Positions 1 to 63,916 of a stretch of 64,000 nt of DNA are shown here, in pieces; positions within the stretch are counted from its first letter, which is position 1; each line of letters begins with the position of its first letter. The DNA comes from Malacoraja senta (taxonomy: Eukaryota): positions 1,178,001 through 1,242,000 of the forward strand of contig CM075981.1 of assembly GCA_038087875.1 (NCBI GenBank). Reading direction: 5' to 3'. The translations under genes and the position numbers were made by a program. The notes beneath the pieces were generated by a model that had not been told where the DNA came from, did not search any database, and worked only from the letters and a program-made list of their open reading frames with translations.

Positions 1-915
1 GATCATTGGAATATCAACATCTGGCTTTCACTCACCGGGCAGCGTGGAGATTAGAAGAATGGGAATCCACATTGTTTTATCCATAATGACAAGGCCAGCA
101 CTTGTCTGCCTGTCACTCAGCTCTGAGCTCTCAGATACAATCACATCTCTCTAATAGCAATTAGGAAGAAGGGAACTGGACGTCAGATCGTGAACCACAG
201 CGAGCCAGCAGCAGCTCGACACGTTGCAGTGTGAAAGGCTCAGGGTTATATTTAACCAATGGTTGTGTCAGAAGATAACAGAGTCATACAGCACGGAAAC
301 AGGCCCTTCTCCCCAACTCGTTAGTACAATATGCTCATCTAAGTTAGTCAAATTTGCCCACGTTCGATCCATATCTCCCCAAACCTTTCCTTTCCATGGA
401 CCAGTCCAAGTGTCCGTTACATGTTGTTATTGCAGATGCTTCAACCACTTCGTTAAGTGTGATGTATCCGTAAGGATGGAGTCAGTCTGTTAACACTGAA
501 CAGTGGTGGAAATATTGATAGACAAAAAAATGCAGGAGAAACTCTGCGGGCCAGGCAGCACCTCTGGACAGAATGGATAGGTGACGTTTCGGGTCGGGAC
601 CCTTCATGTAAACAATGATACGGTGGATATAATATGACATTTAGAAGGGTAGAAACGCCTCAGATGTGTACACTTCCGGATCATTCCCTCTTGATGATTT
701 TGTAAGTTGAACGGCAGATCAAAAATATAAACGTTGGAAGTTTTGTTTTGGCATATTGCTGTTGACAAGGGGCAAAACAGAAAGCTGGCGTTAGGAAGTA
801 GGGGCTTTTCACCTGAAATCAGCTGAGGTTAATTGGAGTTTGACCCTCTCCTCTGTGCTTGAACTCTTTAATTCAAACTTTGAAACGCAATTGTCATGAT
901 ATTCATGTTTTGAAA
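1..915. repeat. Duplicated leader plus upstream (promoter) segment, paralog of ~26850-27785
   Basis: Co-linear high similarity by eye over ~0.9 kb. Confidence 0.85.
36..72 (-). CDS. Leader (signal peptide) exon of receptor gene A, MWIPILLISTLP; the gene continues off the left edge
   Basis: ATG at 72-70, 37-nt phase-1 exon ending CCCG|gtgagt. Paralogous to the leaders at 26885, 40387 and 63880. Confidence 0.8.
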
Positions 916-2319
916 ATGACAATTAATGGTGTTGTGGACTGTGAAGATGTTTGTCTAGAATTACCGCAGGATGGAGATCAGCTGGGAAAGCGGGATGTGG
1001 AATGTAACTGACATGTGGAATGTAATTCAAAAAAGGTCGAAGTGATACACTCAGTGAAGTTAAAGCAAGGTAGAATATGCACGGTGAATTGAATTGCAAA
1101 CTTGTCTTCCTTGCAATGCAGAGCGAATAAGTTATGAGAGTTATGTTCATGTACATTCCATTGGCTGATTTTGTACATCTGCCTGCAACGATTTCATTCC
1201 GGACGCAACCAGTGGCATTATAATATAACCTAATGTCTGCGGTGGGCTATCGTTCTGCGTGTGTTGCTTTCAGGGGAACAGTGCAGTTTATTCGGGTTTT
1301 GTACATCTGTGGCATTGTTGTGCATCACGTGGTATGGGTGTAACACACTGATGTGTCCGCCACTGATGTTAGCTGATCGCTGGCGACCCTCAGTAAAGGA
1401 TCTTGTGTTAAGAGCTATTTCCTGTTTACTTGCCCAACTAAAGAACACTGCAGAGAGGAACAGACGATGCAACAAAACAATTTAATTCTGTCTTCATTCG
1501 CCATTGACCCATGACTTCTGCAAACACTGCTCAGCAAACAGTGTTACAACGAGCTGCTCGCAAGATGCGGTACAGAGATACTAATCTACACACCCTTGTT
1601 TCAGCAGGCCGAGCAAAGTGTCAGCACTACAGAACAATTCAGTGTAAAGACAGAAATGACTGTTTGAACATGTTAGATTAAAGTACATTGCAAGCTAGTA
1701 CCCACCACTAAAAACAACAGTGGCATCGACCCGAAATGTCACCCGTTCTTTCCCTCCAGTGATGCTGCCTATACCGCTGAGTCGCTGCAGTATTTTGTGT
1801 TGATCTGTGGCATCTCAGACCGTTTATCTCTCACTATCTGTGAGGCACTTTGGGATGTCTTGCAGTGGGGAAAAGCTCCAATTCAAGATCGTTCCTCCCA
1901 TTAGACCATTCACAGCTCCATTTGTACGGGCCAGGCGGCATCAGTGTGACCACAGAATCTGCAAGCATCTCTGGCTATTCAGCAACCCTCGGATATCCCT
2001 GACCTGGGGGTTTGTGTGTTCAAAGCAGCCTCTGGTCTCATTTCCTCGTCTCCTGGTTACTGTATGGAGAGTATTTATCTTTGGCAGTGGGGCATTTTAC
2101 CCAAAGCAATCCTTGAGTCTATCCGAACTTTATGGCGGTTACTCCGTTATTGCAGGTCACAATTTTTTTATTTTCAAACATCATCCTTCATAGTTCTTTC
2201 ATGGGCTGTTTACAGTCAGAAGTCAGACATAGGAAAGCAACACAATGTATTTGCAGTTTCACACCTTTGCAAGCTGCAACTCAACCATTTTGTTCTGCAC
2301 AAGAATATATTTTCCACGA

Positions 2320-2614
2320 GTTTAGTTTTGATTAGAGATGCAGCGCGGAAACAGGTATTACGGCCAACCGAGTGCACACTGACCACATCTCACCGCACAT
2401 TAACACTACCCCACACACACTGGAGACAATTTACATTTATAGCCTACACACCTGTACGTCCTTGGAATGTGGGAGGAAACGAAAGATCTCGAAGAAAACC
2501 CCGCGGTTACGGTAGAACGCACAAATTCCGTGCAGACAGCTCCCGTAATCGGGATCGAACCCGGGTCTCCGGCGCTGCAAGCGCTTAAGGCACCAACTCT
2601 ACCGTTGCGCCACC
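2320..2614 (-). mobile_element. tRNA-derived SINE
   Basis: On the minus strand it begins ggtggcgcaacggtagag (A box) and has gggttcgatcc (B box); tail resembles the other SINE copies. Confidence 0.8.
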
Positions 2615-2842
2615 TTATCCATTATTTATAGTCCTTTAACAACTTTGTACGGTGGACAAAATGAATAGCGTTGCAGCATTAAAATGTTTATCAATATTAC
2701 GGTATTCAAAAGACGCGAAAGTGGGGTGATATAGAACCAGTGTGAAAGGGTTGATTGCGGCTTGACGTGGGCTCGGTGGGCCAAATGGTCTGTATCCATG
2801 CTGCATCTTTCAATCACTTAATCGAAAAAAAATAGTTCTACA

Positions 2843-3440
2843 ACATGCTGGAGTAACTCAGCGGGACACGCAGCATCTATGGATGAAAGGAATGGGTGAC
2901 GTTTCGGGTCGAGACCCTTCTTCAGACTGAAGTCAGGGGAGAGGGAGATACTTGGATAAGGAACAATCAGGTGTGAAAACGGGACAAAGGGGTTGTAGAT
3001 CAATGAAAATGTAGAATAGATCATCGTTAGATGGGAGATGGTTACAACAAAGCGATTGAGATAAAATGTAGTCGGAGACTGTCAGACTGATTGGAGAACT
3101 GGCAAGGGGGGGGGGTGGATTGAGTGGGAAAGCAAGGGTTACTTGAAGTTAGAGAAGTCAATGTTCACGTCGCTGCGGTGTAAGCTGCCCAAGCGAAATA
3201 TGAGGTGCTGTTCCTCCAATTTGCGCTGGGACTCACTCTGACAATGGAGGAGGCCCAGGATAGAAATGTCAGTGTGGGAATGGGAGGGGGAGTTTGGTTA
3301 GCTACCGGGATATCAGGCAGGGGGCGGACTGAGCGGAGGGGTTCAGCGAAACGATCGCCGCGAAGCGAGAACAAGCGCAGGCTCGGCGATCGTTTCGCTG
3401 AACACCTGCTCAGTCTGCCTACACCGAACTGATCTCCACA
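2843..3440 (-). mobile_element. Penelope-like retroelement fragment (GIY-YIG C-terminal remnant plus the abundant terminal repeat)
   Basis: Degenerate minus-strand coding GDRFAE.LRSV...KLEEQHLIFRLGSL..NIDFSNFK; same family as the fragment at 24.2-25.0 kb. Confidence 0.65.
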
Positions 3441-4015: not shown

Positions 4016-4063
4016 TCATTGTAATTCGTGTGTCGAGTAGCGAGGTTCTGATTCATTGCGTCT
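4016..4063 (-). pseudogene. Gene B last (short cytoplasmic tail) exon, RRNESEPRYSTHELQ*
   Basis: Acceptor cattgtcttttccag|AGA. Same length, phase and upstream intron sequence as the gene E tail exon (61961-62008, RRDEPNPHSVAPEVK*). Confidence 0.75.
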
Positions 4064-8972: not shown

Positions 8973-9050
8973 CTGAACACCGCGCTTGAGATACCCCACA
9001 TCACAAGCAGGAGTAAGTGCAGCCAGCGCCCAACTTTCCACGAGATGTAA
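8973..9050 (-). pseudogene. Gene B transmembrane pseudo-exon, activating type (YISWKVGRWLHLLLLVMWGISSAVF)
   Basis: Homologous to the gene E TM exon. Acceptor AG changed to AC, 13 nt shorter at the 3' end, donor gtaggc retained. Confidence 0.8.
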
Positions 9051-9825: not shown

Positions 9826-11404
9826 GATCACCAATTACTGACCTCATTGCTGGAGCATGGCTACAAGACTGGGAAAGAGATTACACGGTTAAATGGATTC
9901 GGAGAAGACAGAGAAATAAGTGATGAGGGAGCTGTGAATACAGTGAATGCAGAGTAGATCGACACAAAATGCTGGAAAAAAACAACGGGAGAGGCAGCAT
10001 CTCTGGAGAGAAGGAATGCGTGACGTTTCGGGTCGAGACCATTCTTCAGACTGTGAGTCACGGAAGAGGGAAGCTGGGGATGTGGAAGGATACAAAGAAC
10101 AGTGTAATACCCTGGAATAAAGGAAATGCAGCTGCAAGGAAGATTATAATAAAATATATGGACAGGAATAATAAGAAGGGATCAATTCTAATGGTGGAAG
10201 GGAGATGGGACAATAAATATGGAAACGGATGAGGCCAAGTAATAAAATTAATTAAAAATAATAATGCTTAATCTCACACTCTCGATATTACTTGGATTAA
10301 CGCAGTAGGTGTGTGGATGGAGGAATCGTGTTCGAAAAATCGGTTAAAGGTTCGCTCATAACGGCGTGGCTTTTATTAACATTCTTATTTCCTAAAGCAA
10401 GTATAACACAAGAGTGTGATAGAAAGCCAGATCTATTTCAATTGTAACAAGTTAAATAACAAAATGTTCCCACATTCATGACTGTATTATGATGGAATAT
10501 TCAGGGTTTCTTTTTATAAATGGTTTAAAGTTTAAAGTGTAAGAGAGCGTCAGCTAACTCAGTTCTCTGTTTTCGGTCTGATTCAAGACCGTTTTCTCAC
10601 ATTCTGCGCTAGCGAATTTTTGGTGCATGACCCCATCAATGGCAAGGTGTTCCCACAAGTAATAACAAGGGTGTGTCTTAGCCCATAATTCACAATGCAT
10701 TTACCTATCAGCACCACACCAGAGCAAGTCACAGCAAAGCTAAACTGCAAGACTTGGGTTTGGCAACTATATTCATCTCACAGCATGGGATGAGGTTAGT
10801 GATGGAGAAGTCATGGTGAATACTGCAGGGAAAGCTCTCTGAAAAGCAGCAAAAGGAGGAACTTGTTCTTATCATCCAAGCATGTACACAACACAATGAG
10901 ATGTAAACCCAGTGCGATTCCCCTTCTGATGAGTTAACTAATAACTGGTTTGCAAGTTATATATATATTATTAAAGAATATTAAAGAGACAAATTTATAT
11001 TTGGTGTCAGGCTTGAGACAATAGACAATAGACAAGAGGTGCAGGGGTAGGCCATTTGGCCCTTTGAGCCAGCACCGCCATTCAAAGTGATCATGGCTGA
11101 ACGTACACAATTTGAATATGCTTCATATTTGATTTCATTGGATCAAAGACCCATGGAGAAACACAATATAGAAACAGGTCATTTGGCCCTTCAGGTCTGT
11201 GCCGACCGTCAACTACATTCACATGAATCCTGTGTCAATCCCATTTTTGTTTTCCCCACTTTCTCATCAACTACCACTACCGTCCAATACCCTCCCTCCC
11301 TCCCCCGCCCCACCCCCTATCCACAGATTTGACCGCACTCCTGTACACAAGGGGCAATTTACACCTGGCACATCTTTGGGAGCGGGGAGGAAACTGGAGC
11401 ACAT

Positions 11405-13106: not shown

Positions 13107-13950
13107 GTATCCATAAACTAATCTAAAGGGTGCAATTTCACTTGAGACTTGAGAGGAGTGTTGCTTGGGATGAAACATGACAGTTATGGGGAGGGGTTGG
13201 ATATGGGTTTTATAAAATTCCATGCAGTACAGGTGAGGAAGGGGAAACCAATTACAGATGTACAAAAACAGTGAGCAGCATAGACAGTGTATTTTTGAAA
13301 AATGTTGCACGACAGATATGTGTAAATGTGGAGAACACATGGTTAAGTTAAAGAGCAGGATGTTTCAAGGGTATCAAGAAATATTTTTAAAACTAGAAGG
13401 TGGAGGTACCTGAATTGCCACAATGGACGAGGTGCTGGTAAATGGATCAGTATCGATGGTACTGAATTAACACATTAACACAGTGGACCAGATCTGATAC
13501 CGTCGGCAAGGAGTTAACTGTGGCCACATTTACTGATAATGTCTGATCCCTTACCATATCTGTGTGTGGATCATGTGGAGATGGTGGTGGGAAAGTGAAT
13601 GTGCTTGGACTGATGTCACTGCAAACCTAGTTTAATGCAGTGTAAACACAAAAGGCAATTGTATGCAGGAAGCTAGCCTACACCAGCACTAGGAAATCTA
13701 TTTCTGGGGCCCAACAACCAAGTATTGACGAATAGGCCATAATTCCATCATATTAATCTTGATAAGTTAATTAAATAACGTGCATGGATTTCAGGGTGAC
13801 GGGGGTTATGGGGAGAAGGCAGGAGAATGGGGTGAAGAGGGGAAGATAGATCAGCCATGATTGAATGGTCTATTTCTGCTTCTATCACATGATCTTATGA
13901 ATCACCCCACCCCCACGTCCCCTTCTTTACTCATTCCCTCTAGTACTTAC

Positions 13951-14271
13951 CAGTGCCGTGGATTTTCACTAGGAAACTGCAGGGCACGTCACTGCTGGAG
14001 ATGGACACGTTGACTATTTCACTTGATTATGATCCACGTTTATTTGAGGCTGTGCAGTAATATTGATGGTGCGGGTGTTTGAAGGATTGACAATGTAGAT
14101 CTAGGGCATTGTTTCCTGAGATCTTTGAATCCCCAGATGGGGTCTTTTCATACCAGGTGTATTTAATGGGAAGGAATCCCCGGACCGACTCACAGGACAC
14201 TGTGGCTGAGCCCCCGACACAGGAGACAATGGCTGGTGACTGAAATCCAAGCACAGGAACATACACGTTTT
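13951..14271 (-). pseudogene. Gene B C2-type Ig exon with an in-frame stop
   Basis: Acceptor tttcccacag|, donor G|gtaagt, 321 nt phase 1-1. VSCESVRGFLPIKYTWY...YYCTASNKRGS*SSE: TAA at 14027-14029 where paralogs have AAA. Confidence 0.88.
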
Positions 14272-15780
14272 CTGTGGGAAAGGAGCAAACAGTCAGACAC
14301 TGGGTGAACATCTGAAAATCAAACACTCGCCAATATCCACCATCTCTGTATCTCAGCCAGAGCCGCCAGGTTGGAATCTGACCCATCCATCCATATAGTT
14401 ATAGAGTTATACAGCATAGAAACAGACTCTTCGGTCTAACTTGCTCGTTCTGACCTACACAACCAATCTACACTAGTTCCACCTGCACTTGCTTGGCCGT
14501 TAACCCTCTAAACGTATCCTATTCATGTACCTGATCATTTTTTTCTTAAATGGTGCGAAATTACCTGCCATAACTACTTCCGTCGGCTGTTCGTTTCATA
14601 TGCCTACCAACCTTTGTGTGAAAACGTTACATCGCAGCTTCTTGTTTAATCATCCCCCCCCCCCCACCCCCCCAACCCCAATCTTAAAACTGTTCTCGAT
14701 TCCCCTACTGTGCAAAAGACTCTGTGCACTTACTGGACCAATTCCTCGGATGATGTTGTACCTGCCATAAGATCATGCCATCCTCCTGCGATCCAAGAAA
14801 TAAAGTCCTAGTCCGCTCAACCCCTCCCTGTAGTCAGGCCATCAAGTCATAGCAACATCCTTGTAAGTCTTCTCTGCAACCTATCCAACCTGGCAGCATA
14901 TTTCCTTTAACATGGTGATTAAAACTGACCACAAATCAGACAAATCATCAGACAAACTTTTACATTTTAGAAATTGCCAGCAGGAAAAGGGTGCATCGTT
15001 TATGCAACACCGCCAGATATTCAAAGTAACAAGGAAGCTGCCCATTTGTCTAATCAATATCAAACTGAATGCAGCAGTGCAATTATGAAGGAAATCGACA
15101 GGGACACTCCAGTACAGATGAGGACAATGTCAGCTACTCAGATGTTACATTTCAATGTAACAGCCAAATTACCTGTCAGAAAGCTCCTTCTCCTCACAAC
15201 CATTTACGAGAATTATACATCTCTGTGTCTCTCTATCCTCCCAGCTTCCAGAACTACCATGCCTGCAACTGTACCAGTACACAACAGTACACAACAGCAC
15301 CATCTCTCTTTGTTTTACAATTCCAGCATCTGCTGTTAATCTTTTAACCTGAAACTCTGCCACAATTCTAAATACCAACAGTCAAACACTTCATTAGTGC
15401 AACAGTATCACTATCGACAACTTTTTTAATTTCCTTGTATAATATTGTTGATAGTGATACTGTTGCACTAATGAGGTGTGTGAATGGCGGTATTGTAGAA
15501 TTGTGTGTAGGGAGCGAATGGGAAAGTGGAATAACATAGAACTAGTGTGACCGGTGATCGCTAGTCGGTGTGGACTCGGTGGGCCGAAGGATCCGTTTCC
15601 ATGTTCCATTTGTAAACTATAAATAAATATACGGGTGACATTTTTCTGTAACCTCTCCAAACCTTTCACATCTTTTGTTTTATAAAGCGGCTACCAGAAC
15701 TGTGCACCAGAATCCCACCTAACAAATGTTTTGTGCGGATGCCAAAGTGGAGACATAAAGTCACTCATTGAGAAACCTAC

Positions 15781-16096
15781 CTTCAACGACTTGGAGATGG
15801 ACTTTAAATGTTGGTTCGCCAGGTGTAATAATTCCACAACTGTACCATCCTGTATCTCCAGAGTGAAGATTCTCCACAGTCACAGTAAATATTCCTCGTG
15901 CTGAGTTATCTGTGATTGACACTCTTCCACTCTGTCCATGTTTCCCATTTGTTTCCACATTGTGTACATTGGCGACTTGTCCCAGGGCACCGGTATTTTG
16001 TGCGTGAGCGGTACACTGCTGTATAGTGACAATCGATTGAGATCGCTCTTCTCACATCCACTTGTACTTCACTCTCTGCCCACAGTGCACCTGAAA
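15781..16096 (-). pseudogene. Gene B CD300/pIgR-like IgV exon, frameshifted
   Basis: IDCHY...KYRCPGTSRQC, then DTGWYSCG in another frame; net 2-nt loss near 15960 relative to paralogs. Acceptor ttcag|tttcag and donor AG|gtaggt intact. Confidence 0.88.
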
Positions 16097-16817: not shown

Positions 16818-17411
16818 NNNNNNNNNNNNNNNNNNNNNNNNNNNNNNNNNNNNNNNNNNNNNNNNNNNNNNNNNNNNNNNNNNNNNNNNNNNNNNNNNNN
16901 NNNNNNNNNNNNNNNNNNNNNNNNNNNNNNNNNNNNNNNNNNNNNNNNNNNNNNNNNNNNNNNNNNNNNNNNNNNNNNNNNNNNNNNNNNNNNNNNNNNN
17001 NNNNNNNNNNNNNNNNNNNNNNNNNNNNNNNNNNNNNNNNNNNNNNNNNNNNNNNNNNNNNNNNNNNNNNNNNNNNNNNNNNNNNNNNNNNNNNNNNNNN
17101 NNNNNNNNNNNNNNNNNNNNNNNNNNNNNNNNNNNNNNNNNNNNNNNNNNNNNNNNNNNNNNNNNNNNNNNNNNNNNNNNNNNNNNNNNNNNNNNNNNNN
17201 NNNNNNNNNNNNNNNNNNNNNNNNNNNNNNNNNNNNNNNNNNNNNNNNNNNNNNNNNNNNNNNNNNNNNNNNNNNNNNNNNNNNNNNNNNNNNNNNNNNN
17301 NNNNNNNNNNNNNNNNNNNNNNNNNNNNNNNNNNNNNNNNNNNNNNNNNNNNNNNNNNNNNNNNNNNNNNNNNNNNNNNNNNNNNNNNNNNNNNNNNNNN
17401 NNNNNNNNNNN
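16818..17411. other. Assembly gap (N run)
   Basis: Ns. Confidence 1.
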
Positions 17412-17875
17412 NTGTGTGTGCGTGGGAGGGAAGGAGAAAAGGAAGGGTGGGAGAGAAGGAAGGAAGGAGAGCAGGGAGTGAGGGAAGTAGAGAAATAAGG
17501 GAGGGAGGGAAGGGGAGAAAGAAGGGAGGGAGGGAAGGGGAGAAAGAAGGGAGGGAGGGACGGAGAGAAGGGAAAAGGGAGAGAGGAAGGAGAGAAAGAA
17601 GGGAGGGAGGGAAGGAGAGAAGGGAAAAGAGGGAGAGGAAGGAAAGGGAAGAGGAGAAGTGAGGGAGAGGGCCGGCGGCGGGAGTGGGGAGAGAAAGGGG
17701 AGGAGCAGGGGCTGTGTGCGTGAAGCACGGCGACTGGAGCGGCGGGAGCGCTGCCCTGGGACCGTGAAGGAACGACCCACCTCCCCCTTCTCCATTCCCC
17801 CCCTCTCCCCTCCCCGTCTGCCCCTTGCTTCCCCTCCACCCCCTCTCCACCCCTCACTCCCCCCTCCACCCGGGC
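17412..17875. repeat. Low-complexity GA-rich tract followed by a CT-rich tract
   Basis: (gggag/aagg)n from ~17425 to 17705; ccct-rich from ~17778 to 17872. Confidence 0.85.
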
Positions 17876-43308: not shown

Positions 43309-43936
43309 GATTATGATTATGTTTAAGAGGGAACTGCAGATGCTGGAAAAATCGAAAGGAGACAAAAAAATGCAGGAGATTATGATTATGATCATTTACA
43401 TTTCTAGTGTTGGGGGCAATGTTCCAACACATTTTACATGAAGATAGTTGAGTTGAATTTGAGTGCAGTTTACCGAGGTACAGTGAAACGTTTTTGTAGT
43501 GTGCTAACCAGTCAGCGGAAAGACAATGCATGGTTACAATCGAGCCATCCACAGTGTACTGGTACGTGACAAAGGGAATGACGTGAATAACGTTTAGATA
43601 CAGACAGTGAAGTCCATTCAAAGATAGTGAGAGGGTCTCCAATGCGATGGATAGTAGTTCAAGACTGCTCACGAGTCGTGGGATTATGGCTCAGTAAAAG
43701 CTCGGAAGAATTTGTCCCGCAATCGGGAGGTGTGCGTTTTTACACTTCGTTACATTTTGCCCAACCGGAGAAGGACCCTGAAATTTCCACCCATCTTTTT
43801 TTCTCTGGAAATGCTGCCTGACCCGCTAAGTTACTCCAGCAGTTCGTGTCTATCTTCGGAATATACCAGCCCTTGCAGTTCCTTTCTATGATCTTTGTAT
43901 GACTTTACTTTTAAACTTTTCAGGCTCACTTGACTT

Positions 43937-45089: not shown

Positions 45090-47400
45090 TTGACTTGCGT
45101 GCGCTTCTAACGCCCATTCCAGCAGAAATCTTAACAGTATTTACTATTTTATAAATAACTTTTCCAGAAAATTAACATAGTTTTTTTTTGTTAACAAATA
45201 ATTGCCATAATTTAAGCACTTTAAGTTCAGACTGATTCAGATGGCTCCCTGTGCTTTTCCACCCAGGCTTATGCTGTCGACTTCCTCGTCTCAGTAGCAC
45301 CAGTAAATTTAGATTTGAGTAACAACTGGGTGACTGAGACAGTTACACACTGATACAGAGCGGAAACAGGCCCTTCGGCCGACCGAGTCTGTCGTATTAG
45401 GGAGAATGTACAAACTCCACACAGACAGTACCCGAGTTCAGGATCGAACCTGCGTCTCTTACGCTGCACCGCTACCGTTCCATCACTGCGCCACTGTGCT
45501 TCCTCAGTTAATCAAAATATATATATTTAAAATCAGATTTATACATGGCCATGTTCCTAATACCTTTTTTAAAATTGAACACAAAGTACTGAAGTAATTC
45601 AGCGGGTCGGGCCTCGAAGATATGGGTATAGCATCGTTTCCGGTCGGACCCGCTGAGTTACTCCATCCAGTACTTTGTGTGAACGCAAGATTCTATCATC
45701 TACAGGGCCTTGTTTCTCCACTAGTTTTTTTGTTGTTGTAAATTCCAGGTTAATTTCATAGCCAGAAGTTCAAATCTTCTTCTGTTGTGGTAGGATTTGA
45801 ACCCATAATCAATTGTGGGATCACTGGCGCAGAACTCAATGCCAAACCGTTATTTTCTAATTGATTTAATTTCAAAATTTTTGATTAATTCTGGTGTCCT
45901 CCATTTATGTTGAATCAGATTTGGAGAAGTATCCTGATGCGAAATGCCTGAGCCTCAGAGTTCCTCAATTAACTTGTTTGCTGGTGAACATTAAATATAC
46001 TGCACCGCACTAGGTCACAACTCAGTAATTTTCCATGACTTTGAGTAATCGTAGCCTTTTGCCTGGAATGAAATCGTACACAATACAATAATAAATCCCT
46101 GTTGTCACCAAACCAGTACCTTCAAATCCAAACTACATTTTTTTAATCTGTTAAGTTTATGTCTTCTTTTCTTGAATTAACAATAAATATTTTCTACTTA
46201 AACAATTCCTATCCAACAACTTCCCCTTTTCATGTTTTTGTGTGTGCCTCTCGGTGTTCCTCTCGGTGCGCCTGCAACGTTCTGTAAGAAACAAGCAGCT
46301 AGGTTGAGTCACTGGAAATCAGCACCTGGAATAATGATGGAACAGTGTATCTTTAGACCCACAGAAGGGCGCAACTTATACAGGCACGGTTATTTTCCAC
46401 GTCTGATTATTACCTGGAATGATGAGCTATCAATACCTCACAAAAAAATTACAAGCACTATTCCTGATCCCCATTTGGGCCCTTTACCTCTCTTGGACTG
46501 TGTGTTGCATTTGTCGTATCTGATTGTTCGATATCATTGATATAAATGCAATGTACAGGCCTAGAGGTGCACATTTGGACAATCATATTAATTCCAGAGA
46601 TTTACTATGCTCTGACTAAAGAAGTTCCTCCTCACCCCCGTTTTAAAAGAGCACCCTTTAATTCTGAGGCTATGACCTCAGATCCTAGACTCTCCCACCA
46701 ATGGAAACATCCTTTCCACATCCACTCTATGCCTTTCGTTATTCTGTAAGTTTCAATGAGGTCCCCCCTCAACCTTCTAAACTCCAGCGAGCACAGGCCC
46801 TGTGCTGTCAAACGCTGACAATAGAGAATGTATAAAGATATCAGAGTCCATTTAAAGACGAGAATGCCAACAGAATGCTCACTGACAAGATGAATCTAAT
46901 ACTCCAAATTTTTCTCCCAGCTCTTACTTCTCAAGCTTAGCAAGCCCTCTGTAAAGATTCGTAGAATAGGAAGAAGGCAGCAGGAAGGTTGATCATGAGT
47001 CTTGGCTGAGCCTGCACAAAACATCTGGCCGGAAGAGGTTCAAATTTCTGTTTCCTCAAAAATTATTACGTGTGTGATAGGTAATACATAAAGACAGTAA
47101 AGAAATGTCAATGCAGGCAATAAATAGAGGAATATATTTGACAGTTTACTGCAAAATAAAATTACGAATTAAAATCTTGGCAGAAATGGATAACAACAAT
47201 CCAAGTGAGGGGCTTATACTCAATGGTGAAATGAGGAACAACATGTTCTCAGTTACTCAGAACAGAAATGTGGAACAAGACAGAAGGAATATAAATTGTG
47301 AAACCACCGTGAGCTCGTTGATAGAGACTGACCCTCAGAGTTTGAATTTCACAATGTGTAAATGACAATTTAAAAAAATATATGTTTTTCATATTTTGAT

Positions 47401-47700
47401 GGGTGGCACAGTGGTGCAACTAGCAGAGCTACAGGCTTACAGCGGAGAGATCTGGGTTCGATCTGACCTTGGGTCCTGTCTGTGTGGAGTTTGCACGTTC
47501 TCTCTGTGACCGCGTTGGTTTTCCCCGGGTCTTCCGGTTTCCTGCTACATGCGAAAGACTTGCGAGTATATAAACTAATTGCCTTCTGTAAATTGCCCTG
47601 AGTGTTAAGCAAAGTTTGTAGACACTTGTGTTTGAACGTGTGATAGATGGTCGGCGCGGAATGATTGGGCGGAAAGACTTGCTTCCATGCTGCATCTCTG
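47401..47700 (+). mobile_element. tRNA-derived SINE (its duplicate is at ~56030-56310)
   Basis: A and B boxes; shared by both duplication copies. Confidence 0.8.
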
Positions 47701-48360
47701 AAAGAATCATCCAATAATATAACATAATGCAATAATGTAGAGTAGAGCCACAGGTGAAGTGATCAATCATTTTCAATTACCCTCAATTCCTTAGACATTA
47801 CCATTCAATTACCCTAAATTCCTTAGACATTACCAATCCTGATGACGCCTTAATCCTGCCTCGTTCATCTTCCTGTCGGTCAATTAAAGTTGGATTCCTT
47901 TTGTTCGTTGAGTGCAACGGAGAGGACTTTAGAGTCATAGAGTGTGGAAACAGGCCCTTCGGCCCAACTTGCTCACACCGGCCAACGTGTCCCAGCTTCA
48001 CTAGTCTCTCCTGGCCCATATCCCTCCAAACCTGTTCTCGCAATGTAACTGTCCAACAGTTTCTTAAAAGTTGGGATAGTCCCTGCCTCAGCTACCTCCT
48101 CTGGTAGCTCGTTCCATACATTCACTACCGTTTGTTTGAAAATGTTACTCCTCAGATTCCTTTTAAACCTTTTCCCCCGTCACGTTAAACCTATTCAAAT
48201 TTCAAATTTAATGTGTGATATTTCATCGGCCACTGTCACGTTTCCTGTTGTATTCTTCCATATTTAAATTGCACCAATGTCTGTGATGTTGGGAAATAAT
48301 TTAGCTCTGACGACAAAAAGCTGAACAACAAGCTTTGGCCTGGTCGCTGTTGATGAAACC

Positions 48361-48394
48361 ATATGGATTCTGATACAAATTAGCTACTTGCCCG
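48361..48394 (+). pseudogene. Gene E probable leader exon with ATG changed to ATA (IWILIQISYLP)
   Basis: 34 nt, CCCG|gtgagc. Upstream gacaaaaagctgaac resembles the sequence before the other leaders. No in-frame upstream ATG (TGA at 48322-48324). Confidence 0.65.
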
Positions 48395-49176: not shown

Positions 49177-49201
49177 GCAGATAATAGAATGGAATCCACA
49201 T
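49177..49201 (-). pseudogene. Truncated leader remnant (ATG TGG ATT CCA...) at the left breakpoint of duplication copy 2
   Basis: aaaacaATGtggattcca, then homology is lost; no donor site. Confidence 0.6.
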
Positions 49202-49249
49202 TGTTTTTTTCATGGTGACCTGTTCCAGCACTTGTCCATCACTCAATAC

Positions 49250-50792
49250 CAAGGCCGGATTTACGTATAAGCTTCACAAGCTTAAGCTTAGGGCCTCGAG
49301 ATCTAGGGGCGCCTCGGCAGGGCCGGATTTACCTACAGGCCTCATAGGTTGAAGCCTAGGGCCTCAAAATCTAGGGGGCCTCCGGCCAAGGTGTTTTTTT
49401 ATCAGAGTAAAAAAATCCCGAGAAAAAAATTAATTGGAGCGCTATCAGCATTTGCACTTTGACGGAAATTACCCAAAATTCTTGTTCCGGCCCGCTGGAA
49501 GTTTTTTTTGGGGGGGGGGGGAATTGCGACCATCCGCGCCTGCGCAGTGGGCCCGGGCGGGTACAGATCTCCATTTGCACTCCACGCAATCACCTCGATG
49601 CTTCGTGTCCACCAAAGATTCTAGGTGTCTACTCAAGGTAAGTAGTGGAATATTGCGTTGCGGGAGTGCCCGTTTCTCTGGGCCAGGGGGGGGGTGAGGT
49701 GGCTGCGGTGTCTGTGGCGTGGAGTTGGAGCCTCGCTGCATGGGAGGGGGGAGGGGAGAGGGGCAGAGAGAGAGGGGAGGGGGGAGGGGGGAGGGGGGAA
49801 GGGGAGAGGGGAGGAGGGAGAGAGAGGTGGAGGGAGAGGGAGGGGAAAGGAAGAGGGGGAGAGGGAAAGGGGGATTATCTTTAGTGAGATTGCAAAATTA
49901 AGGTAGGTTTTAGAGCAATTATATTTTCTCCTCCATATGAATAATATCAAACAATTGGAACTGCTTTCTTTTCCTTGATAACAATACTGACAAATATGAA
50001 TTCCATAGTTTCCAACTTTCATTTTGCATCATATTTTTAATGTGCACACACTAACACAGTCGAACAGTAACAGGCAATCAAATCCACCCAAAACATTTTC
50101 TAAAAGAAGGTTTTATTTACTGCAAAAACTTACAGTATTTTATTTGCAGTGTCTGCATGATCCTTTATAACATTTTACACAAAATGTTACAGTATAACTT
50201 GATTATAAAAACAAGATTATTAAATCAATCCTTGATTTAAAAAAATGTATACAACAATGACCCAATCATCCCATTCCAACCATTAGTCATTAGTCATTAA
50301 TCTAGACTCAACCAAAATTATTTCTGAAATATTGGTCATAAATTTTGTGCATACAGTAAATTCTCCAAAATATGGCTAAGAATGCACCAGAGAGCATCAA
50401 AACCCCCAGAGCTTCCAGGGCCCTTAAGCTGCCACGCCACCACACTTTTTCAAAAGCTTCGTACAGGCCTGGTGTATAATATTTTTGACACTGTCAGAGG
50501 CCTTTCTTACATATGCTGTCACAACGCACTGTAGTCTCTAAACAACACTTCAGTAATTTTCCTTGACCTCCATTTCAGAATAATAGTGTTTTAAGCTGAT
50601 AACTCGACACTAGCACTATCAATTAATAAAAAGCGCAGCTTTCCAGACCTTATCTCATTGGCCACGCTCGGCTGCACATCGGTGTCAATCTGGTGGACTC
50701 TTCCATCTTCCTCTCGTCGTGGGGGTGGGGGATTGGGAGGGGCCTCACAAGTGGAATAGCCTAGGGCCTCTTTTCATCTAAATCCGGCCCTG
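49250..50792. mobile_element. Non-autonomous hAT-type DNA transposon (~1.54 kb)
   Basis: TIRs ca(a/g)ggccggattta and taaatccggccctg. Degenerate 8-bp TSD ctcaatac/ctgaatat. Empty site at ~40463. No transposase ORF seen. Confidence 0.82.
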
Positions 50793-53418
50793 CTGAATAT
50801 GTGCAATATGAATGGGGAAGAAGGAAGCAGGAAGCTGGTTTGTAAACCCGCAGTATGCCAGATATTAAAATATCACACGTCGGCACTTGTTGTCCTCTCA
50901 GCTCAATTTTACAAATTCATCTCTTTGCATTTCCATTGCATGTCGGAAATAGCTCAATTTGGTTTAGTTTAGATATGCTGCGCGGAAACAGGCCCTTCAG
51001 CCCAACGAGTCCACGCCGACCAGCGATCCCCCACGCATTACACACACTTTGTGTGCCGGGCTTGGTTCAGGTGCGATCATTCGTGCGTCTGGTACCAAGG
51101 TTAGGGCATGTTCTGCCTCGCCTGGAAAGATCCGACATATTCGCGGCTACCCAACTATGACAAGAGTAGGCAGTTGTGTTTCGAGGTTTCCACGCTGATA
51201 CAGTCAGCTGCTAGTGACATGTAAACCAATAAAAGACTTCTCCCATTGTAATAAGTCTCGCCCATGACAACAGGCTCTGCCAGCTCTCCAGGTTGTGTCC
51301 ACACATGGTGAAAGTCCCTCCACCAAACATGCTGCATGCGTGTTTCAAATGCAGCCAGTGTCAGGGGTGGTGGACATGATCTCGTACAAGAGGCAGCTGA
51401 TGGGCCGAACCGTCTGAGGCCTTCAACCCCACATTGATATTAATAAACGGAGGCAAAAATAAAATAAAATGCTGGACGAACAGAGAAGGCCAGACAGCAG
51501 CTGTGAAGAGAAATGGACAGATAACTTTTCGGTTCGGAGTCCCTCTTGAAGAGGAAGGGTTACGACCCGAAATGTGTTCCACCCATTTCACTCATAGTTA
51601 TTTCCTGACCCGCGTAGTTACTCTTTATTTCCCCAGGATTTTAGCATATTTGGCCTATTGTCTCTCGCGAAATAAACAGGACCGCAAGACATGGGACCAT
51701 AAATAGAGTCTGCTCCGCCATTCGATCATGGCTGATCTATTTTTTCCTTCTCAACTCCATTTTGCTGCTTTCTCCCCATAACCCCTGACACCCATACTAA
51801 TCAAGAATTTAACAATAGCCGCCTTAACAATACCCAATGTCTTGGCCTCTACCACCGTCTGTGATATTGAATTCCACAGGTTCACCACGCTCTAGCTGAA
51901 GAAATTCCTCCTCTTCTCCATTCTAAAAGGAGTTTATTTATTCTGAGACTGAGTCTCCTCATCCTAGATTCTCCCACTAGTGGAAACATCCTCTCCACAT
52001 CCACTTTATCCAGGCCTTTCATTATTCGGTAATTTTCAATAAGGTCAAATGTTCAAATCTCCGGCGAGTGCAGGCCCAGTGCTGACAAACTGTTATACTC
52101 CCCACATCCATTCTATCTAGGCCTCGAAACTCACATCTGTTCGCTGGTTTGGGGGTCACCTCCATTCATACCATCTTTTTTTCTCCTGAAATGCTGCCTG
52201 AGCTGCCAAGTTACTCCAGCAGTTTGTGTCTATCTTCGGAATATACCAGCACTTGCAGTTCCTTTCTATGATCTTTGTATGACTTTACTTTTAAACTTTT
52301 CAGGCTCACTTGACTTGCGTGCGTTTTTATCGCCTATTCCAGCAGACATCTTAACAGTATTTACTATTTTATAACTTTTCCAGAAAATGAACATCGTTTT
52401 TTTTTGTTAACAAATGCTATAATTTAAGCACTTAAAGTTCAGACTGATTCAGAAGGCTCCCTGTGGTTTTCCGCCCAGGCTTACTGCTGTCGACTTTCTC
52501 GTCTCAGCACCACCAGTAAATTTAGATTTGAGTAACAACTGGGTGACTGATACAGATACACACTGATACAGAGCGAAAACAGGCCCTTCGGGCCACCTAG
52601 TCTGTGGTAATAGGGAGAACGTACAAACTCCACACAGACAGTACCCGAGTTCAGGATCGAACCTGCGACTCTGGCGCTGCACCGTTACCGCTCTATCACT
52701 GTCCCACTGTGCTTCCTCAGTTAATCAAAATATATATATATTTAAGATCAGATTTATACATGGCCATTGTTCCTAATACCTTCTTTTAAATTGAACACAA
52801 AGTACTGGTGTAATTCAGCGGATCAGGCCTAGAGGATGTGGGTATAGCAACGTTTCGGGTCGGACCCGCTGAGTTATTCCATCCAGTACTTTGTGTGAAT
52901 GTAAGATTCTATCATCTACAGGGCCTTGTATCTCCACTAGTTTTTTGTTGTTGTAAATTCCGGGTTTATTTCATAGCCAGACGTTCAAATCTTTTTCTGT
53001 TGTGGTGGGATTTGAACCAATAATCAATTGTGGGATCACTGGCGCAGAACTCAATGCCAAACTGTTAATTATAATTTATTTAATTTCTTAATTTTAGATT
53101 AATTCTGGTGTCCACCATTTATGTTGAATCAGATTTGGAGAAGTATCCTGATGCAAAATGCCTGAGCCGCTGAGTTCCTCAATTAACTTGTTTGCTGATG
53201 AACATTAAATAAACTGCACCGCACCAAGTCACAGCTCAGTTATTTTCCATGACCTTCACTGATTGTGTCCTTTCGCCTGGAATAAAATGGTGCACAAGAA
53301 AATAATAAATCCCTGTTGTCACCAAACCAGTAGCTTCAAATCAAAAAGTGCATTTTTTAAAATCTGTCAAGTTTATGTCTTCCTTTCTTGAATTTACAAT
53401 AAACGATACCTACTTTTT

Positions 53419-54842
53419 CAAAAGGGCATCAATTATACCAGTGCCCAAGAAGAGTAAGGTGACGTACCTCAATGACTATCGACCTGTGGCACTACGCCTG
53501 TGGTTATGAAGTGCTTTGATAGGTTGATCATGGCGCAGATCAACTCCTACCTCGACAAAAACTGGACCAACTGCAGTTCGCTTACTGCCACAACAGATCA
53601 ACGGTGGATGCGATCTCGCTGGCCCTTCATCCTGCTCTGGACCACTTGGACAACAAAAACTCATATGTCAGGCTGTTATTCATCTATTACAGCTCGGCAT
53701 TTAATACAATCATCCCCTCCAAGCTGGTTACCAAACTCGCAGAACTTTGTCTCTGCGCATCCCTCTGCAATTGGATCCTTGACTTCCTCACTCTCAGACC
53801 ATAGTCTGTTCGTATTGGTGGAAATGTGTCAGACTCGATAACAATCAGCACGGGAGCACCTCAAGGCTGCGTGCTCAGCCCCCTGCTGTACTCACTCTAT
53901 ACTCATGACTGCGTAGCCGGTCATAGTGCGAGCTCCATCATCAAGTTCGCTGACGACACCACTGTTGTGGGATGTATCACTGATGGGGATGAGTCAGAGT
54001 ATAGAAGAGGGATCGAGCAACTGTCCATATGGTGCCAGCACAATAACCTGGTCCTCAACACCAGCAAAACCAAGGAACTGATTGTGGACTTTGGAAGCAG
54101 TAGGATGGGGACCCACAGTCCCGTTTATATCAACGGGTTGATGGTTCAAAGGGTCAAGACCTTCAAATTCCTGGGCGTGCACATCTCTGAAGATCTTTCC
54201 TGGTCCGAGAACACTGATGCCATTATTAAGAAAGCACATCAGCGCCTCTACTTCCTGAGAAGATTACGGAGAGTCGGTTTGTCAAGGAGGACTCTCTCTA
54301 ACTCCTACAGGTGCACAGTAGAGAGCTGCTGACCGGTTGCATCGTGGCTTGGTTCGGTAAATTGAGCGCCCTGGAGAGGAAAAGACTACAAAAAGTAGTA
54401 AACACTGCCCAGTCCATCATCGGCTCTGACCTCCCTTCCATCGAGGGGATCTATCGCAGTCGCTGCCTCAAAAAGGCTGGCAGTATCATCAAGGACCCAC
54501 ACCATCCTGGCCACACACTCATCTCCCTACTACCTTCAGGTAGAAGATACAGGAGCCTGAAGACTGCAACGACCAGGTTCAGGAATAGCTACTTCACCAC
54601 AGTCATCAGGCTATTAAACTTGGCTTGGACAAAACTCTAAACTTTAATAGCCCATTAACTGTTATTTGCACTTTATTAGTTTATTTATTCATGTGTGTAT
54701 ACATTTATAGAATGTTATATGGACACACTGATCAGTTTTTGTAGTCAATGCCTACTATGTTCTGTTGTGCTGAAGCAAAGCAATAATTTCATTGTCCTAT
54801 CAGGGACACATGACAATAAACTCACTTGAACTTGAACTTGAA
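53419..54842 (+). mobile_element. Rex1/Babar-like LINE 3' fragment, specific to duplication copy 2
   Basis: [27 protein letters not shown]; (acttga)n tail; absent at ~46200. Confidence 0.88.
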
Positions 54843-56557
54843 TTACTAACCAACAACTTCCCTTTTTCATGTCTTTATGTGTTCCTCTCAGTGCGCCTGC
54901 AATGTTCTGTAAGAAACAAGCAGCTAGGTTGGTTCACTGGAAAACAGCACCTGGAATAATGATGGAACAGTTTATCTTTAAACCCACAGAAGGACACAAC
55001 TTATACAGGTAACGGTTATTTTCCTCTTCATATTATTACCTGGAATGATGATCTATCAATACCACAAAAAAAATTACAAGCACTATTCCTGATCTCCAAT
55101 TGGACCCTTTACCTCTCTTCGAGTGTATGTTGCATTTGTCTTATCTGATTGTTCAATATCATTGATATAAATGCAATGTACAGGCCTAGAGGTGAGACAT
55201 TTGGAGCATCATATTAATTCCACAGATTAAATACCCTCTGACTAAAGAGGTTCCTCCTCACCTCCGTTCTAAAAGAGCACCCTTTAATTCTGAGGCTATG
55301 ACCTCAGCTCCTAGACTCTCCCACCAATGGAAGCTTCCTTTCCACATCCACTCTATCTATGCCTTTCATTATTCTGTAAGTTTCAATGAGGTCCCCCCTC
55401 AACCTTCTAAACTCTAATGAGCACAGGACCAGTGCTGTCAAACGCTGACAATAGAGAATGCGTAAAGATATCAGAGTCCAGTTAACCATGAGAGTGCCAA
55501 CATAATGCTCACTGATAAGATTTAACTAATACTCAAGATTTGTCTCCCAGCTCTTACTTCTCAAGCCTAACAAGCCCTACGTAAAGATTCATAGAATAGG
55601 AAGAAGGCAGCAGGAAGGTTGATCATGAGACTAGGCCGAGCCTGCACAAAACATCTGGCCGGAAGAGTTTCAAATTTCTTTCCTCAAAAAAATTGATGTG
55701 TGTCTGATAGGAAATACATAAATACAGTAAAGAAATGTCAATGCAGTCAATAAATAGAGGAATATATTTGACAGTTTACTCCAAAATAAAATTACGAGTT
55801 AAAATCTTGGCAGAAATGGATAACAACAATCCAAGTGAGGAGGTTATACTCAATGGTGAAATGAGGAACAACATGTTCTCAGTTACTCAGAACAGAAATG
55901 TGGAACAAGACAGAAGGAAGATAGATTGTGAAACCATCGTGAGCTCATTTATAGGGACTGATCCTCAGAGTTTGAATTTCACAATGTGTAAGTGACAATT
56001 AAAAAAAAAAGATGTTTTTCATATTTTGATGGGTGGCACAGTGGTGCAACTAGCAGAGCTACAGGCTTACAGAGGAGAGAGGCCCGGGTTCGATCTGACC
56101 TCGGGTCCTGTCTGTGTGGAGTTTGCATGTTCTCTCTGTGCCCGGGTCTTCCGGTTTCCTGCTACATCCAAAAGACTTGCGAGTTTGTTAACTAATTGCC
56201 CTCTGTAAATTGCTCTGAGTGTTAAGCAAAATGTGTAGACACTTGTGTTTGAACGTGTGATAGATGGTCGGCGCGGACTGATTGGGCGGAAAGACTTGCT
56301 TCCGTGCTACATCTCTGAACGAATCATCCAATAATATAACATAATGCAATAATGTAGAGTAGAGCCACAGGTGAAGCGATCAATCACTTTCAATTACCCT
56401 CAATTCCTTAGACATTACCATTCAATTACGCTCACTTCCTTAGACATTACCATTCCTGATGATACCATTCCTGATGACCTCTCTGTCCTGGGCCTCCTCC
56501 ATGGCCAGAGTGAGCACCACTGGAAATTGGTGGCATGAACATTGAATTCTCACAATT

Positions 56558-57998: not shown

Positions 57999-58319
57999 TT
58001 TCAGGAGCACTGTCGGCAAAGAAATGGGTAGGAGGAGTTTTGGGAAGAGCGATCACAATCGATTGTCACTATGCCGCAGAGCACCGCTCACACGCAAAAT
58101 ATTGGTGCGGTGGAAGGAGTCGCCAGTGTACAGTTTTAGTGGAAACAAATGGACAATACGGACGGATTGGAAGAGTGTCAATTACAGATAAACCGGCACG
58201 AAGAATATTTACTGTGACTGTGGAGGATCTTCACTCCGGAGATACAGGATGGTACAACTGTGGAATTAATACACCTGGCAAGGATCCATTGTTTAACGTA
58301 TATCTCCAAGTATCTGATG
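57999..58319 (+). CDS. Gene E CD300/pIgR-like IgV exon, intact
   Basis: IDCHY...KYWCGGRSRQC...DTGWYNCG; ctctcag|tttcag acceptor, G|gtacgt donor; 321 nt. Confidence 0.92.
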
Positions 58320-59185: not shown

Positions 59186-59500
59186 AACCCGTGTCTGTTC
59201 CTGTCCTTGTATTCCTGTCACCAACCAATGTTTCATGTACCTATGGCTCAGTATCACTGTCCTGTGAGTCTGTCCAGGGATCCCTGCCCATTCGGTACAC
59301 ATGGCATGAAAGGGCCACATATATGGATTCAAAGATCTCGAACAACAGTCAATTGGATCTACACTGTGGATCCTTCAAACGCCAGCACCATCAATATTTC
59401 TGCACAGCCTCCAATAATCGTGGAACAAAATCCAGTGAAATGGTCAACGTGACAGTCATCACCAGAGTGGTGTATTGTCATTATGTGACAGTAATCAAAG
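59186..59500 (+). CDS. Gene E C2-type Ig exon, intact, with GC donor
   Basis: tttccaacag|, 315 nt phase 1-1, AAAG|gcaagt; LSCESVQGSLPIRYTW...YFCTASNNRG. Confidence 0.88.
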
Positions 59501-60163: not shown

Positions 60164-60266
60164 ACCTTGAATATCCTTGTGAAACCTTAACAACGGAATG
60201 GACAACAACGCCATCTGAGAATGCAAAAATAACATCGAACAGTACCCGATCCAGGTCCTTTGAAAG
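60164..60266 (+). CDS. Gene E Ser/Thr-rich stalk exon (DLEYPCETLTTEWTTTPSENAKITSNSTRSRSFE)
   Basis: ccctatctcaacag| and AG|gtacaa; 103 nt phase 1-2, open. Confidence 0.8.
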
Positions 60267-60324
60267 GTACAATGTTCTCAATTGACCAGTGTTGCGTCTG
60301 TATGATACCTGCTTCAGAGAGTCT

Positions 60325-61580: not shown

Positions 61581-61671
61581 TTACGTGATATGGAAAGTGG
61601 GGCGATGGGTTCTCTTTACCCTGCTTGCGGTGTGGACTATTTCAGTCACACGGTACACGAGAAAACCCCAG
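61581..61671 (+). CDS. Gene E transmembrane exon with basic residues (SYVIWKVGRWVLFTLLAVWTISVTRYTRKPQ)
   Basis: tcttctttcctcag| and CAG|gtaggt; phase 2-0 matches the flanking exons. Confidence 0.85.
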
Positions 61672-61960: not shown

Positions 61961-62008
61961 AGACGTGATGAACCAAATCCTCACAGTGTGGCCCCTGAGG
62001 TAAAATGA
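61961..62008 (+). CDS. Gene E last exon, short tail RRDEPNPHSVAPEVK*
   Basis: gccttttgcag|, phase 0; paralogous to 4016-4063. Confidence 0.78.
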   Translation, partial: RRDEPNPHSVAPEVK

Positions 62009-62257: not shown

Positions 62258-62590
62258 CACGGTGGCACAGCGGTAGAATTACTGCCGTACAATTACTGCC
62301 GTACAGCGCTTGCTGCCCCGGAGACCCGGGTGCGATCCCGATTACGGGTGCTGTCTGCATGGAGTTTGTGCGTTCTCCCCGTGACCGTGTGTGTTTTCGC
62401 CGAGATCTTCGGTTTCCTCGCACACTCCAAAACCGTACAGGTTTCTTGGTTAATTGGCTTGGTGTAAGTATAAATTGTCCCCAGTGTGTGTAAGATAGTG
62501 TTAACGTGTGGGGATCACTTGTCGGCGCGGACTTGGTGGACAGAAGGGCCTGTTTCCATGCTGTATCTGTAATCTAAACTAAAAAACTAA
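62258..62590 (+). mobile_element. tRNA-derived SINE
   Basis: A box, degenerate B box gggtgcgatcc, family tail. Confidence 0.8.
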
Positions 62591-62814
62591 ATACCACACT
62601 GTAATCTCCCGCTTTCCCCTCACCATCTGTTTTAGATTATTTATAGCCAGCTGCCAACATAATAATTCACACCAAGTTCCATTGAACAATCAATTTGGGG
62701 ATCATTAAAATATATTGGTTCCCAGTCCCATACAGTCTGCACTACAACATTCTCATCCTCACATTCAAATATGCCAGACACCTCATCTCTCGGATTCTAT
62801 CTAATGTTCTACCT

Positions 62815-63570
62815 AATGTTATCTCACTTTTTAAGAAAGGAGGGAGAGAGAAAGGGAATTATAAACCAGTTAGCCTGACATCGGAGGTGGGGAAGATGCA
62901 GGAGTCAATTATAAAAGATGAGATGGCCGAACATTTGGATAGCAGTGACAGGATCGGTCTGAGTCCGCATGGATTTACATAGAAACATAGAAACTTAGAA
63001 AATAGGTGCAGGAGTAGGCCATTCGGCCCTTCGAGCCTGCACCGCCATTCAATATGATCGTGGCTGATCATCCAACTCAGTATCCTGTACCTGCCTTATC
63101 TCCATACCCCCTGATCCCTTTAGCCACAAGGGCCACATCTAACTCCCTCTTAAATATAGCCAATGAACTGGTATCAACCACCCTCTGTGGCAGAGAATTC
63201 CACAGATTCACCACTCTGTGTGAAAAAAAATTTATCATCTCGGTCCTAAAAGACTTCCCCCTTATCCTCAAACTGTGACCCCTTGTTCTGGACATCCCCA
63301 ACATCGGGAACAATCTTCCTGCATCTAGCCTGTCCAACCCCTTAAGAATTTTGTAAGTTTCTATAAGATCCCCCCTCAATCTTCTAAATTCTAGCGAGTA
63401 CAAGCCGAGTCTATCCAGTCTTTCTTCATATGAAAGTCCTGCCATCCCAGGAATCAGTCTGGTGAACCTTCTCTGTACTCCCGCTATGGCAAGAATGTCT
63501 TTCCTCAGATTAGGAGACCAAAACTGTACGCAATACTCCAGGTGTGGTCTCACCAAGGCTCTGTACAACT
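62815..63570. mobile_element. Two abutting CR1 fragments (+ 62815-62978; - 62979-63570 with tail)
   Basis: PLFKKGGREK..YKPVSLTS on the plus strand; RPHLEYCVQFWSP and (ctatgttt)n on the minus strand. Confidence 0.85.
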
Positions 63571-63879
63571 CGTCCTTGATTCTGCTGCTGGCCTTGCCAA
63601 GGCAACGTGAGGTACAAATGGAGTGAAGGAAGGAAGGTTGGTTTGTGTGATTACCATCAATCAGCGAAATTAGTTTCAGTCTTATTTGTTAAAAATAACC
63701 AAGGGTATGTTGTGATGTAAGGTCTCAGACATCAGCTGGTCCTTTGTGCTTTTTTGACTAGACTTCCTGCTGCCTTCTTCCTCATTTTTATTCCATTTAT
63801 AATGTAAGTGGTTTTGTTAACTTTGAGGACAAAGAGCTGAGCGACAAACAGGTGTTACCCGGTCTCTACGAATCAAACA

Positions 63880-63916
63880 ATGTGGGTTCCGATTCTTGTC
63901 ATTTGTTCCTTGCCCG
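63880..63916 (+). CDS. Leader exon of receptor gene F, MWVPILVICSLP; the gene continues off the right edge
   Basis: aaacaATG, 37 nt, CCCG|gtgagt. Confidence 0.82.

Follow-up and report, generated by a model that had tools for sequence, protein, structure and literature searches.

A 64-kb segment of the Malacoraja senta genome, very probably from the skate MDIR multigene cluster and located at a change of gene orientation

What kind of receptor locus is found in a 64-kb stretch of DNA from the skate Malacoraja senta in which exons for two types of immunoglobulin (Ig) domain occur together with two types of transmembrane (TM) segment? The stretch, referred to here as the window, corresponds to C5:1178001-1242000 of a 1.94-Gb assembly, and its DNA is vertebrate, with many fragments of long and short interspersed elements (LINE and SINE). 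The original prediction, made from the letters of the sequence, took it for a paired innate receptor locus, probably of the modular domain immune-type receptor (MDIR) family, with an ectodomain that combines a CD300/pIgR-type V domain and an FcR-like C2 domain. Our analysis leads us to regard the window, with high confidence, as a piece of the skate MDIR multigene cluster that lies at an orientation change, and we infer that its receptors are of the paired type. Three gene bodies are present (D, E, and an MDIR5-like pseudogene), together with the initial exons of A and F, the genes on either side. MDIRs were first described, in skates, in a 2006 study (Cannon et al. 2006, Immunogenetics 58:362); a paper that cites it (PMC3031540) presents them as multigene families with activating and inhibitory members and with relatives in CD300, TREM, FCAR, and pIgR. 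The family is thus already known, and the window contains no new kind of receptor.

When the best open frames of the two domain types were used for a translated search of the window, four V and four C2 exons were recovered, with E-values of 1e-10 to 1e-77. Pfam assigned both V exons scanned to the V-set family (9e-12 for the exon at 58.0 kb and 9e-11 for that at 34.6 kb) and the C2 type to Ig_2/Ig_3 (1e-7 to 2e-5), while among solved structures the V domain is nearest to pIgR and CD300 (CD300A and CD300F; best single-domain matches of about 1e-19) and the C2 domain to FCRL5 and FCRL4, by which the predicted pairing of domain types proved correct. In the V domain the motif KYWC(x7)QC adds two cysteines, a C-C' pair, to the canonical pair, as is characteristic of CD300/CMRF35 domains. 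Every V or C2 exon is of phase 1-1, so domains can shuffle between genes, and two-domain genes (D and E) stand beside four-domain ones (the pseudogene and gene A), which is the modularity characteristic of MDIRs.

When the V domain was searched against 1.8 billion proteins, many elasmobranch matches at 60 to 80% identity were returned. Among named proteins, MDIR2, MDIR3, and MDIR5 of the clearnose skate, Rostroraja eglanteria, come closest, with the same domain order and 70 to 89% identity per domain; MDIR1 and MDIR4 were not recovered in the protein searches. In MDIR2, V and C2 are followed by a neutral TM segment and a tail that bears the motifs IMYAAV, DTYARV, and PIYASV; MDIR5 runs V, C2, V, C2, and then SWKVGRW and a short tail; and MDIR3 has five Ig domains and a tail with immunoreceptor tyrosine-based inhibitory motifs (ITIMs). 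The window genes share with these proteins their domain types and order and the multigene modular layout, and the matches run colinear exon by exon at 70 to 89% identity; they differ in coming from another skate species and in being genomic exons where the clearnose sequences are cDNAs. Separate trees of the V and C2 domains agree with each other, each with starred support: gene D falls in the MDIR2 clade with its little skate orthologue, gene E with the Rhinoraja model P0029, and gene A in the MDIR3/MDIR5 clades. In a related skate sequencing run, a 2044-nt contig carries the D C2 exon, then 118 nt, then the TM exon, and we take it for a spliced form because 118 nt is the length of the little skate stalk exon. 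The agreement of the two trees and this spliced C2-stalk-TM contig speak against V and C2 exons that come from separate known genes and against a complete lack of splicing. The MDIR assignment of the original prediction, as far as sequence comparison goes, is thereby supported.

The same evidence bears on whether the locus simply holds true skate orthologues of pIgR or CD300 and no separate family, which would agree with the automatic names "polymeric immunoglobulin receptor-like" and "CMRF35-like" given to models in relatives and with the structural matches of the V domain. We consider this most improbable, as the nearest named relatives are MDIRs and the plan is a V domain plus an FcR-like C2 domain, not V only. 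Each V exon is followed by an in-frame C2 exon, unlike the single-V ectodomain of mammalian CD300, which is encoded by a handful of genes where more than 100 exons are present here. CD300 receptors, which bind lipid ligands, do resemble the window genes in the extra C-C' disulfide of the V domain, and would also do so in forming pairs with either an ITIM tail or a charged TM residue. pIgR, which matches the V domain best among solved structures, is a single gene that encodes between two and five V domains in tandem and a long sorting tail used in transcytosis; it has neither a C2 domain nor paired TM types, whereas here there are more than 100 paralogues with paired TM types and short or predicted ITIM-type tails. 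FCRL4 and FCRL5 are the best structural matches of the C2 domain, but the FCRLs are composed of C2/I-type domains only and have other tails; here only the C2 domain resembles them, and the N-terminal domain is of the CD300/pIgR type.

The size of the family further agrees with an MDIR cluster. Genome-wide, we found at least 139 V-exon and at least 69 C2-exon matches, nearly all stop-free, which concentrate on C5 between 0.67 and 1.77 Mb and on four unplaced contigs (C1219, C1824, C1977, and C4994). V exons lie on the minus strand to the left of the window and on the plus strand to its right, so the window holds the orientation switch. The sequence WKVGRW is encoded exactly about 10 times within the cluster and these unplaced contigs. 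In the same regions, sets of V and C2 matches recur with identical E-values at spacings of about 22 to 58 kb, which suggests either very recent tandem duplication or an array assembled in duplicate.

Gene D has the following visible exons, which all lie on the minus strand and have good splice sites:

40387-40423, minus strand: leader exon, 37 nt (MWNPILIVCSLP), with ATG and a phase-1 GT donor; promoter box at 40485-40504
34595-34915, minus strand: V exon, 321 nt, phase 1-1, CD300/pIgR-type, with the extra C-C' cysteine pair
33204-33512, minus strand: C2 exon, 309 nt, phase 1-1
31612-31724, minus strand: stalk exon, 113 nt
30412-30503, minus strand: neutral TM exon (IILIIVLSVTGVLLVVIFACLLLYLRNRHK)
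29173-29219, minus strand: first cytoplasmic exon, 47 nt (ESKCNTHHRARANGTQ)

Sequence comparison identifies D as a single-copy orthologue of MDIR2. The D TM exon occurs once in the genome, and little skate LOC129708882 is colinear with the locus, introns included, at 86 to 92% nucleotide identity over a stretch that starts 1.7 kb before the leader and ends at position 27986. From leader to stalk, D shows 79% identity with MDIR2 and 84% with its little skate counterpart, and it shares with MDIR2 the neutral TM segment and the motif ESKCNTHHRARANGT; the Rhinoraja orthologue of D matches MDIR2 (416 aa) over its full length at 70% identity. An assembly gap at 33870-34065 falls in the intron between the V and C2 exons, and the sequences on its two sides map in order to one and the same intron of the little skate gene.

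As assembled, the gene does not chain. The stalk contains a run of seven A residues at 31685-31691 where the little skate has six, giving an exon of 113 nt where the phases need 112 (1 modulo 3), and the extra A therefore causes a frameshift and a stop. Contigs of same-species DNA from one run (X1) end inside the A run, and the bridging contig from another (X2) has two indels; of the two readings, a real frameshift and an assembly error, we somewhat favor the latter.

Only one cytoplasmic exon of D, that of 47 nt, is visible in the window. Sensitive protein searches and motif scans did not find the ITIM exon in the visible sequence downstream of 29173. A candidate, an NVTY match at 27444-27455, was rejected, as it appears to fall within repeat-like sequence surrounded by stop codons. 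In the little skate, the ITIM tail is a single last exon of 318 nt that begins 177 nt past the end of the alignment with the window; because that alignment stops at 27986, we predict from this comparison that the ITIM-bearing last exon of D falls within the assembly gap at 27786-27985.

Gene E, on the plus strand, carries the other TM type:

48361-48394, plus strand: candidate leader, 34 nt, with ATA in place of ATG and no in-frame start nearby
57999-58319, plus strand: V exon, 321 nt, phase 1-1
59186-59500, plus strand: C2 exon, 315 nt, with a GC donor (AAAG|GCAAGT)
60164-60266, plus strand: stalk exon, 103 nt, phase 1 to 2 (beginning DLEYPCETLTTEW)
61581-61671, plus strand: TM exon SYVIWKVGRWVLFTLLAVWTISVTRYTRKPQ, with WKVGRW; Lys and Arg in the outer third
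61961-62008, plus strand: last exon, 15 aa, RRDEPNPHSVAPEVK, then stop

If the GC donor is used, the exons from V to tail join in frame to give a product of 292 aa without a signal peptide; GC donors define a rare but usable intron class, and this one lies in the perfect context AAG|GCAAGT. The ectodomains of E and D have 67% amino acid identity, and their V exons, together with 225 nt of intron, are about 89% identical at the nucleotide level. The 5' end is less regular. The candidate leader is the sole one on the plus strand upstream of E and lies 9.6 kb before the V exon, and the interval between them contains a duplicated block (50792-56462) and mobile elements; no second leader was found in this duplicated and mobile-element sequence between 48.4 and 58.0 kb. 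Because the matching leader has ATA, lies 9.6 kb upstream, and is separated from the V exon by the duplicated block and mobile elements, E may be a pseudogene, or its first exon may have been misassembled. Its nearest relative is the Rhinoraja model P0029 (81%), where the V and C2 exons come after the corresponding upstream block and a leader that is intact. The plan of E, two Ig domains with a Lys/Arg TM segment, is absent from the MDIR entries retrieved and is represented by automatic models in thorny skate and catshark.

Two further observations concern this region. An open frame (MDNNNPSEG...) occurs on the plus strand at 47081-47362 and again at 55711-55992; in P0029, an NCBI model, it forms the N-terminal coding exon just upstream of the E-type leader, and it probably represents either a 5' exon or an artefact of annotation. 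The segments 40462-47845, which includes the region upstream of D, and 50792-56462 form a segmental duplication with 88 to 90% identity, and the second copy is the block that lies between the presumed leader and the V exon of E.

The third gene body corresponds to what the original prediction had parsed as two units, B and C:

26885-26921, minus strand: leader, with ATG changed to GTG
25702-25803, minus strand: V1 relic, 102 nt, with an internal deletion of about 219 nt
22959-23279, minus strand: C2a exon, with two stop codons and a Cys-to-Tyr change; 74% identity to MDIR5 C2a
15781-16096, minus strand: V2 exon, with a frameshift and a conserved Trp changed to Arg
about 13948-14271, minus strand: C2b exon, with one stop codon (TAA); 78% identity to MDIR5 C2b
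8973-9050, minus strand: TM exon with SWKVGRW; splice acceptor AG changed to AC
4016-4063, minus strand: last exon, 15 aa, RRNESEPRYSTHELQ, then stop

These exons match MDIR5 V1, C2a, V2, C2b, TM, and tail in order and are colinear with gene A, and we therefore conclude that B and C are a single four-domain MDIR5-like gene running from about 27.0 kb to 4.0 kb on the minus strand. V2 has 81 to 85% identity to MDIR5 V2 (81%) and MDIR3 V3, and the end of the protein matches the MDIR5 terminus (ESEPRHSAHELQ) in the pattern ESEPR.S.HELQ, as the TM exon does in SWKVGRW. With at least eight lesions the gene is a clear pseudogene; the V1 relic, besides its deletion, has lost its first cysteine, and the Trp of GWYSCG, before the last cysteine, has become Arg (GRSSCG). 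A search for the stalk exon yielded only a weak candidate at 10733-10838. The intron between V2 and C2b contains, at 14971-15344 on the plus strand and thus inverted, what is left of an ITIM-type last exon with a frameshift (...DEDNVSYSDV...), and a tandem repeat of about 760 bp (20052-20815 and 20811-21574, 99.3% identical), which appears to be retroelement-derived, occupies the long intron of this pseudogene.

That B and C are instead two separate two-domain genes, with the leader of B hidden in the assembly gap at 16818-17412, is very unlikely. V2 does begin like a leader-proximal V exon (VSGALWAE...), and the gap is only 0.7 kb upstream of it; however, the pseudogene is colinear with intact gene A from promoter through V1 and C2a to V2 without a leader between C2a and V2, and the gap, in the C2a-to-V2 intron, sits inside an insertion relative to gene A. 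Each exon best matches the corresponding MDIR5 domain, and the phase-1 donor of C2a joins V2 in frame (...NNTVSGALWAESEV) as in MDIR5.

With B and C as one gene, the predicted exon chains fare unevenly: of four units said to have splice phases that chain, D fails to do so as assembled, B and C merge into one pseudogene, and E chains from V to tail by way of its GC donor. The two predicted TM types are both present, WKVGRW with a 15-aa last exon occurring twice and the neutral type in D, but of the additional tail exons proposed for D only the one of 47 nt is found.

Several of these results weigh against our reading of the window. As assembled, D is frameshifted, and no ITIM exon can be seen for it in the window; E lacks a start codon that could be used and needs a GC donor; and, no RNA run for this species having been found, D and E are known from genomic exons. 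Owing to these features and the lesions of the pseudogene, all three gene bodies could be non-functional. In its strong form, this would make D, E, and the four-domain gene all true pseudogenes, with working MDIR pairs only elsewhere in the 1-Mb array, a possibility to which we assign a real but clearly minor share of the probability. Every gene body has at least one lesion, and leader and promoter relics and segmental duplications crowd the interval from 46 to 56 kb. However, D is single copy and matches an intact little skate gene over its whole length, its V, C2, TM, and first cytoplasmic exons are open, and its only visible defect is one homopolymer base in a draft assembly with gaps, at a run where independent DNA contigs break or give no clear length. 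In our reading of the window as part of an MDIR cluster, D and E may be functional, ligand-binding receptors.

How such receptors would signal can be proposed from their TM segments and from relatives. Members of the family would act as paired receptors, and D and E do combine similar ectodomains with the two TM types. Those of the neutral-TM MDIR2 type would recruit SHP-type phosphatases through ITIMs and thereby inhibit; for D, the ITIM tail, outside the visible sequence, is suggested by the tails of its orthologues. Where a Lys/Arg TM segment is combined with a very short tail, signaling would pass through an adaptor whose own TM segment contains Asp, such as FcR-gamma, and gene E would provide this type by joining a D-like two-domain ectodomain to the WKVGRW segment and a 15-aa tail. 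As the Arg of E is followed by just 15 hydrophobic residues, the membrane helix must include both Lys and Arg, in its outer third, and receptors that pair with FcR-gamma likewise have basic residues in the outer third of the membrane helix. An FcR-gamma-like TM exon with Asp is present on the same contig, 18.6 Mb away (C5:19864556-19864642). A fold of the E TM exon with two copies of this exon gave a score of 0.05, which speaks neither for nor against binding. In the 2006 MDIR study, MDIR5 is reported to lack typical signaling motifs, a further point against our reading, and for that reason we only infer an activating role for WKVGRW.

The remaining features of the window are leaders, promoter elements, and assembly gaps, those not already listed being as follows:

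36-72, minus strand: intact leader of gene A, 37 nt, with ATG and a phase-1 GT donor
63880-63916, plus strand: intact leader of gene F, 37 nt, with ATG and a phase-1 GT donor
about 49186-49219, minus strand: truncated leader relic without a donor
27012-27031, 40485-40504, 46968-46987, 50815-50834, and 55598-55617, minus strand: promoter box
63763-63782, plus strand: promoter box
16818-17412, 27786-27985, and 33870-34065: the three assembly gaps, none of which breaks an exon

Gene A is a tandem copy of the MDIR5-like pseudogene, with its V1, C2a, and V2 exons 1 to 19 kb to the left of the window, and the V and C2 exons of gene F lie 7 to 9 kb to the right. The leader exon, of 34 to 37 nt, is present in six copies, in agreement with the prediction that at least six units share it; only half of the copies begin with ATG (36-72 and 40387-40423 on the minus strand and 63880-63916 on the plus strand), and the window holds three gene bodies once B and C are merged. 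A conserved GGAA-rich box of 20 nt (CTTCCTGCTGCCTTCTTCCT) lies 80 to 120 nt upstream of leaders, with six occurrences against none expected by chance, and from its sequence it looks like a putative ETS/PU.1-type site. Three copies of the box have lost their leader exon, and leader and promoter relics are scattered among the window genes. G/A-rich low-complexity tracts (GGREGEKEGR... in translation) occur at 17491-18053 and 49640-49900, adjoining the gap at 16818-17412 and near leader relics, and are the likely cause of the assembly break.

KIR, LILR, teleost pIgR-like receptors, DICP, and NITR follow the paired activating and inhibitory logic that is proposed here and likewise form multigene clusters that evolve by birth and death. 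They belong to other Ig lineages, and the likeness is functional and not by descent, with the teleost pIgR-like receptors as a possible exception. A bolder proposal, which we consider rather unlikely as a whole, is that the window is the turnover center of a two-armed MDIR array of more than 1 Mb with at least 139 V exons, in which a conserved, single-copy inhibitory gene of the MDIR2 type stands beside fast-evolving Lys/Arg-TM genes that copy its V exon by gene conversion; such conversion is suggested by the 89% nucleotide identity of the V exons and by the extension of this likeness into the intron. If true, this would point to a pathogen-driven arms race as in KIR/Ly49, predating the shark-ray split and acting on a CD300/pIgR-type domain.

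The window adds to what is known of the family exon-level gene structures with a corrected parsing, the layout of a cluster with its orientation switch, tandem copies, and decay, and a candidate adaptor gene. In related skates, automatic models of these genes are named "polymeric immunoglobulin receptor-like," "CXADR-like," or "uncharacterized"; "CMRF35-like" also occurs among relatives and "Fc receptor-like" among automatic annotations, and the structures given here can be used to correct labels such as "pIgR-like," "CXADR-like," and "Fc receptor-like." MDIRs are the cartilaginous-fish branch of the CD300/pIgR/TREM/FcR-like receptors, and they show paired activating and inhibitory signaling together with Ig exon shuffling at the base of the jawed vertebrates.

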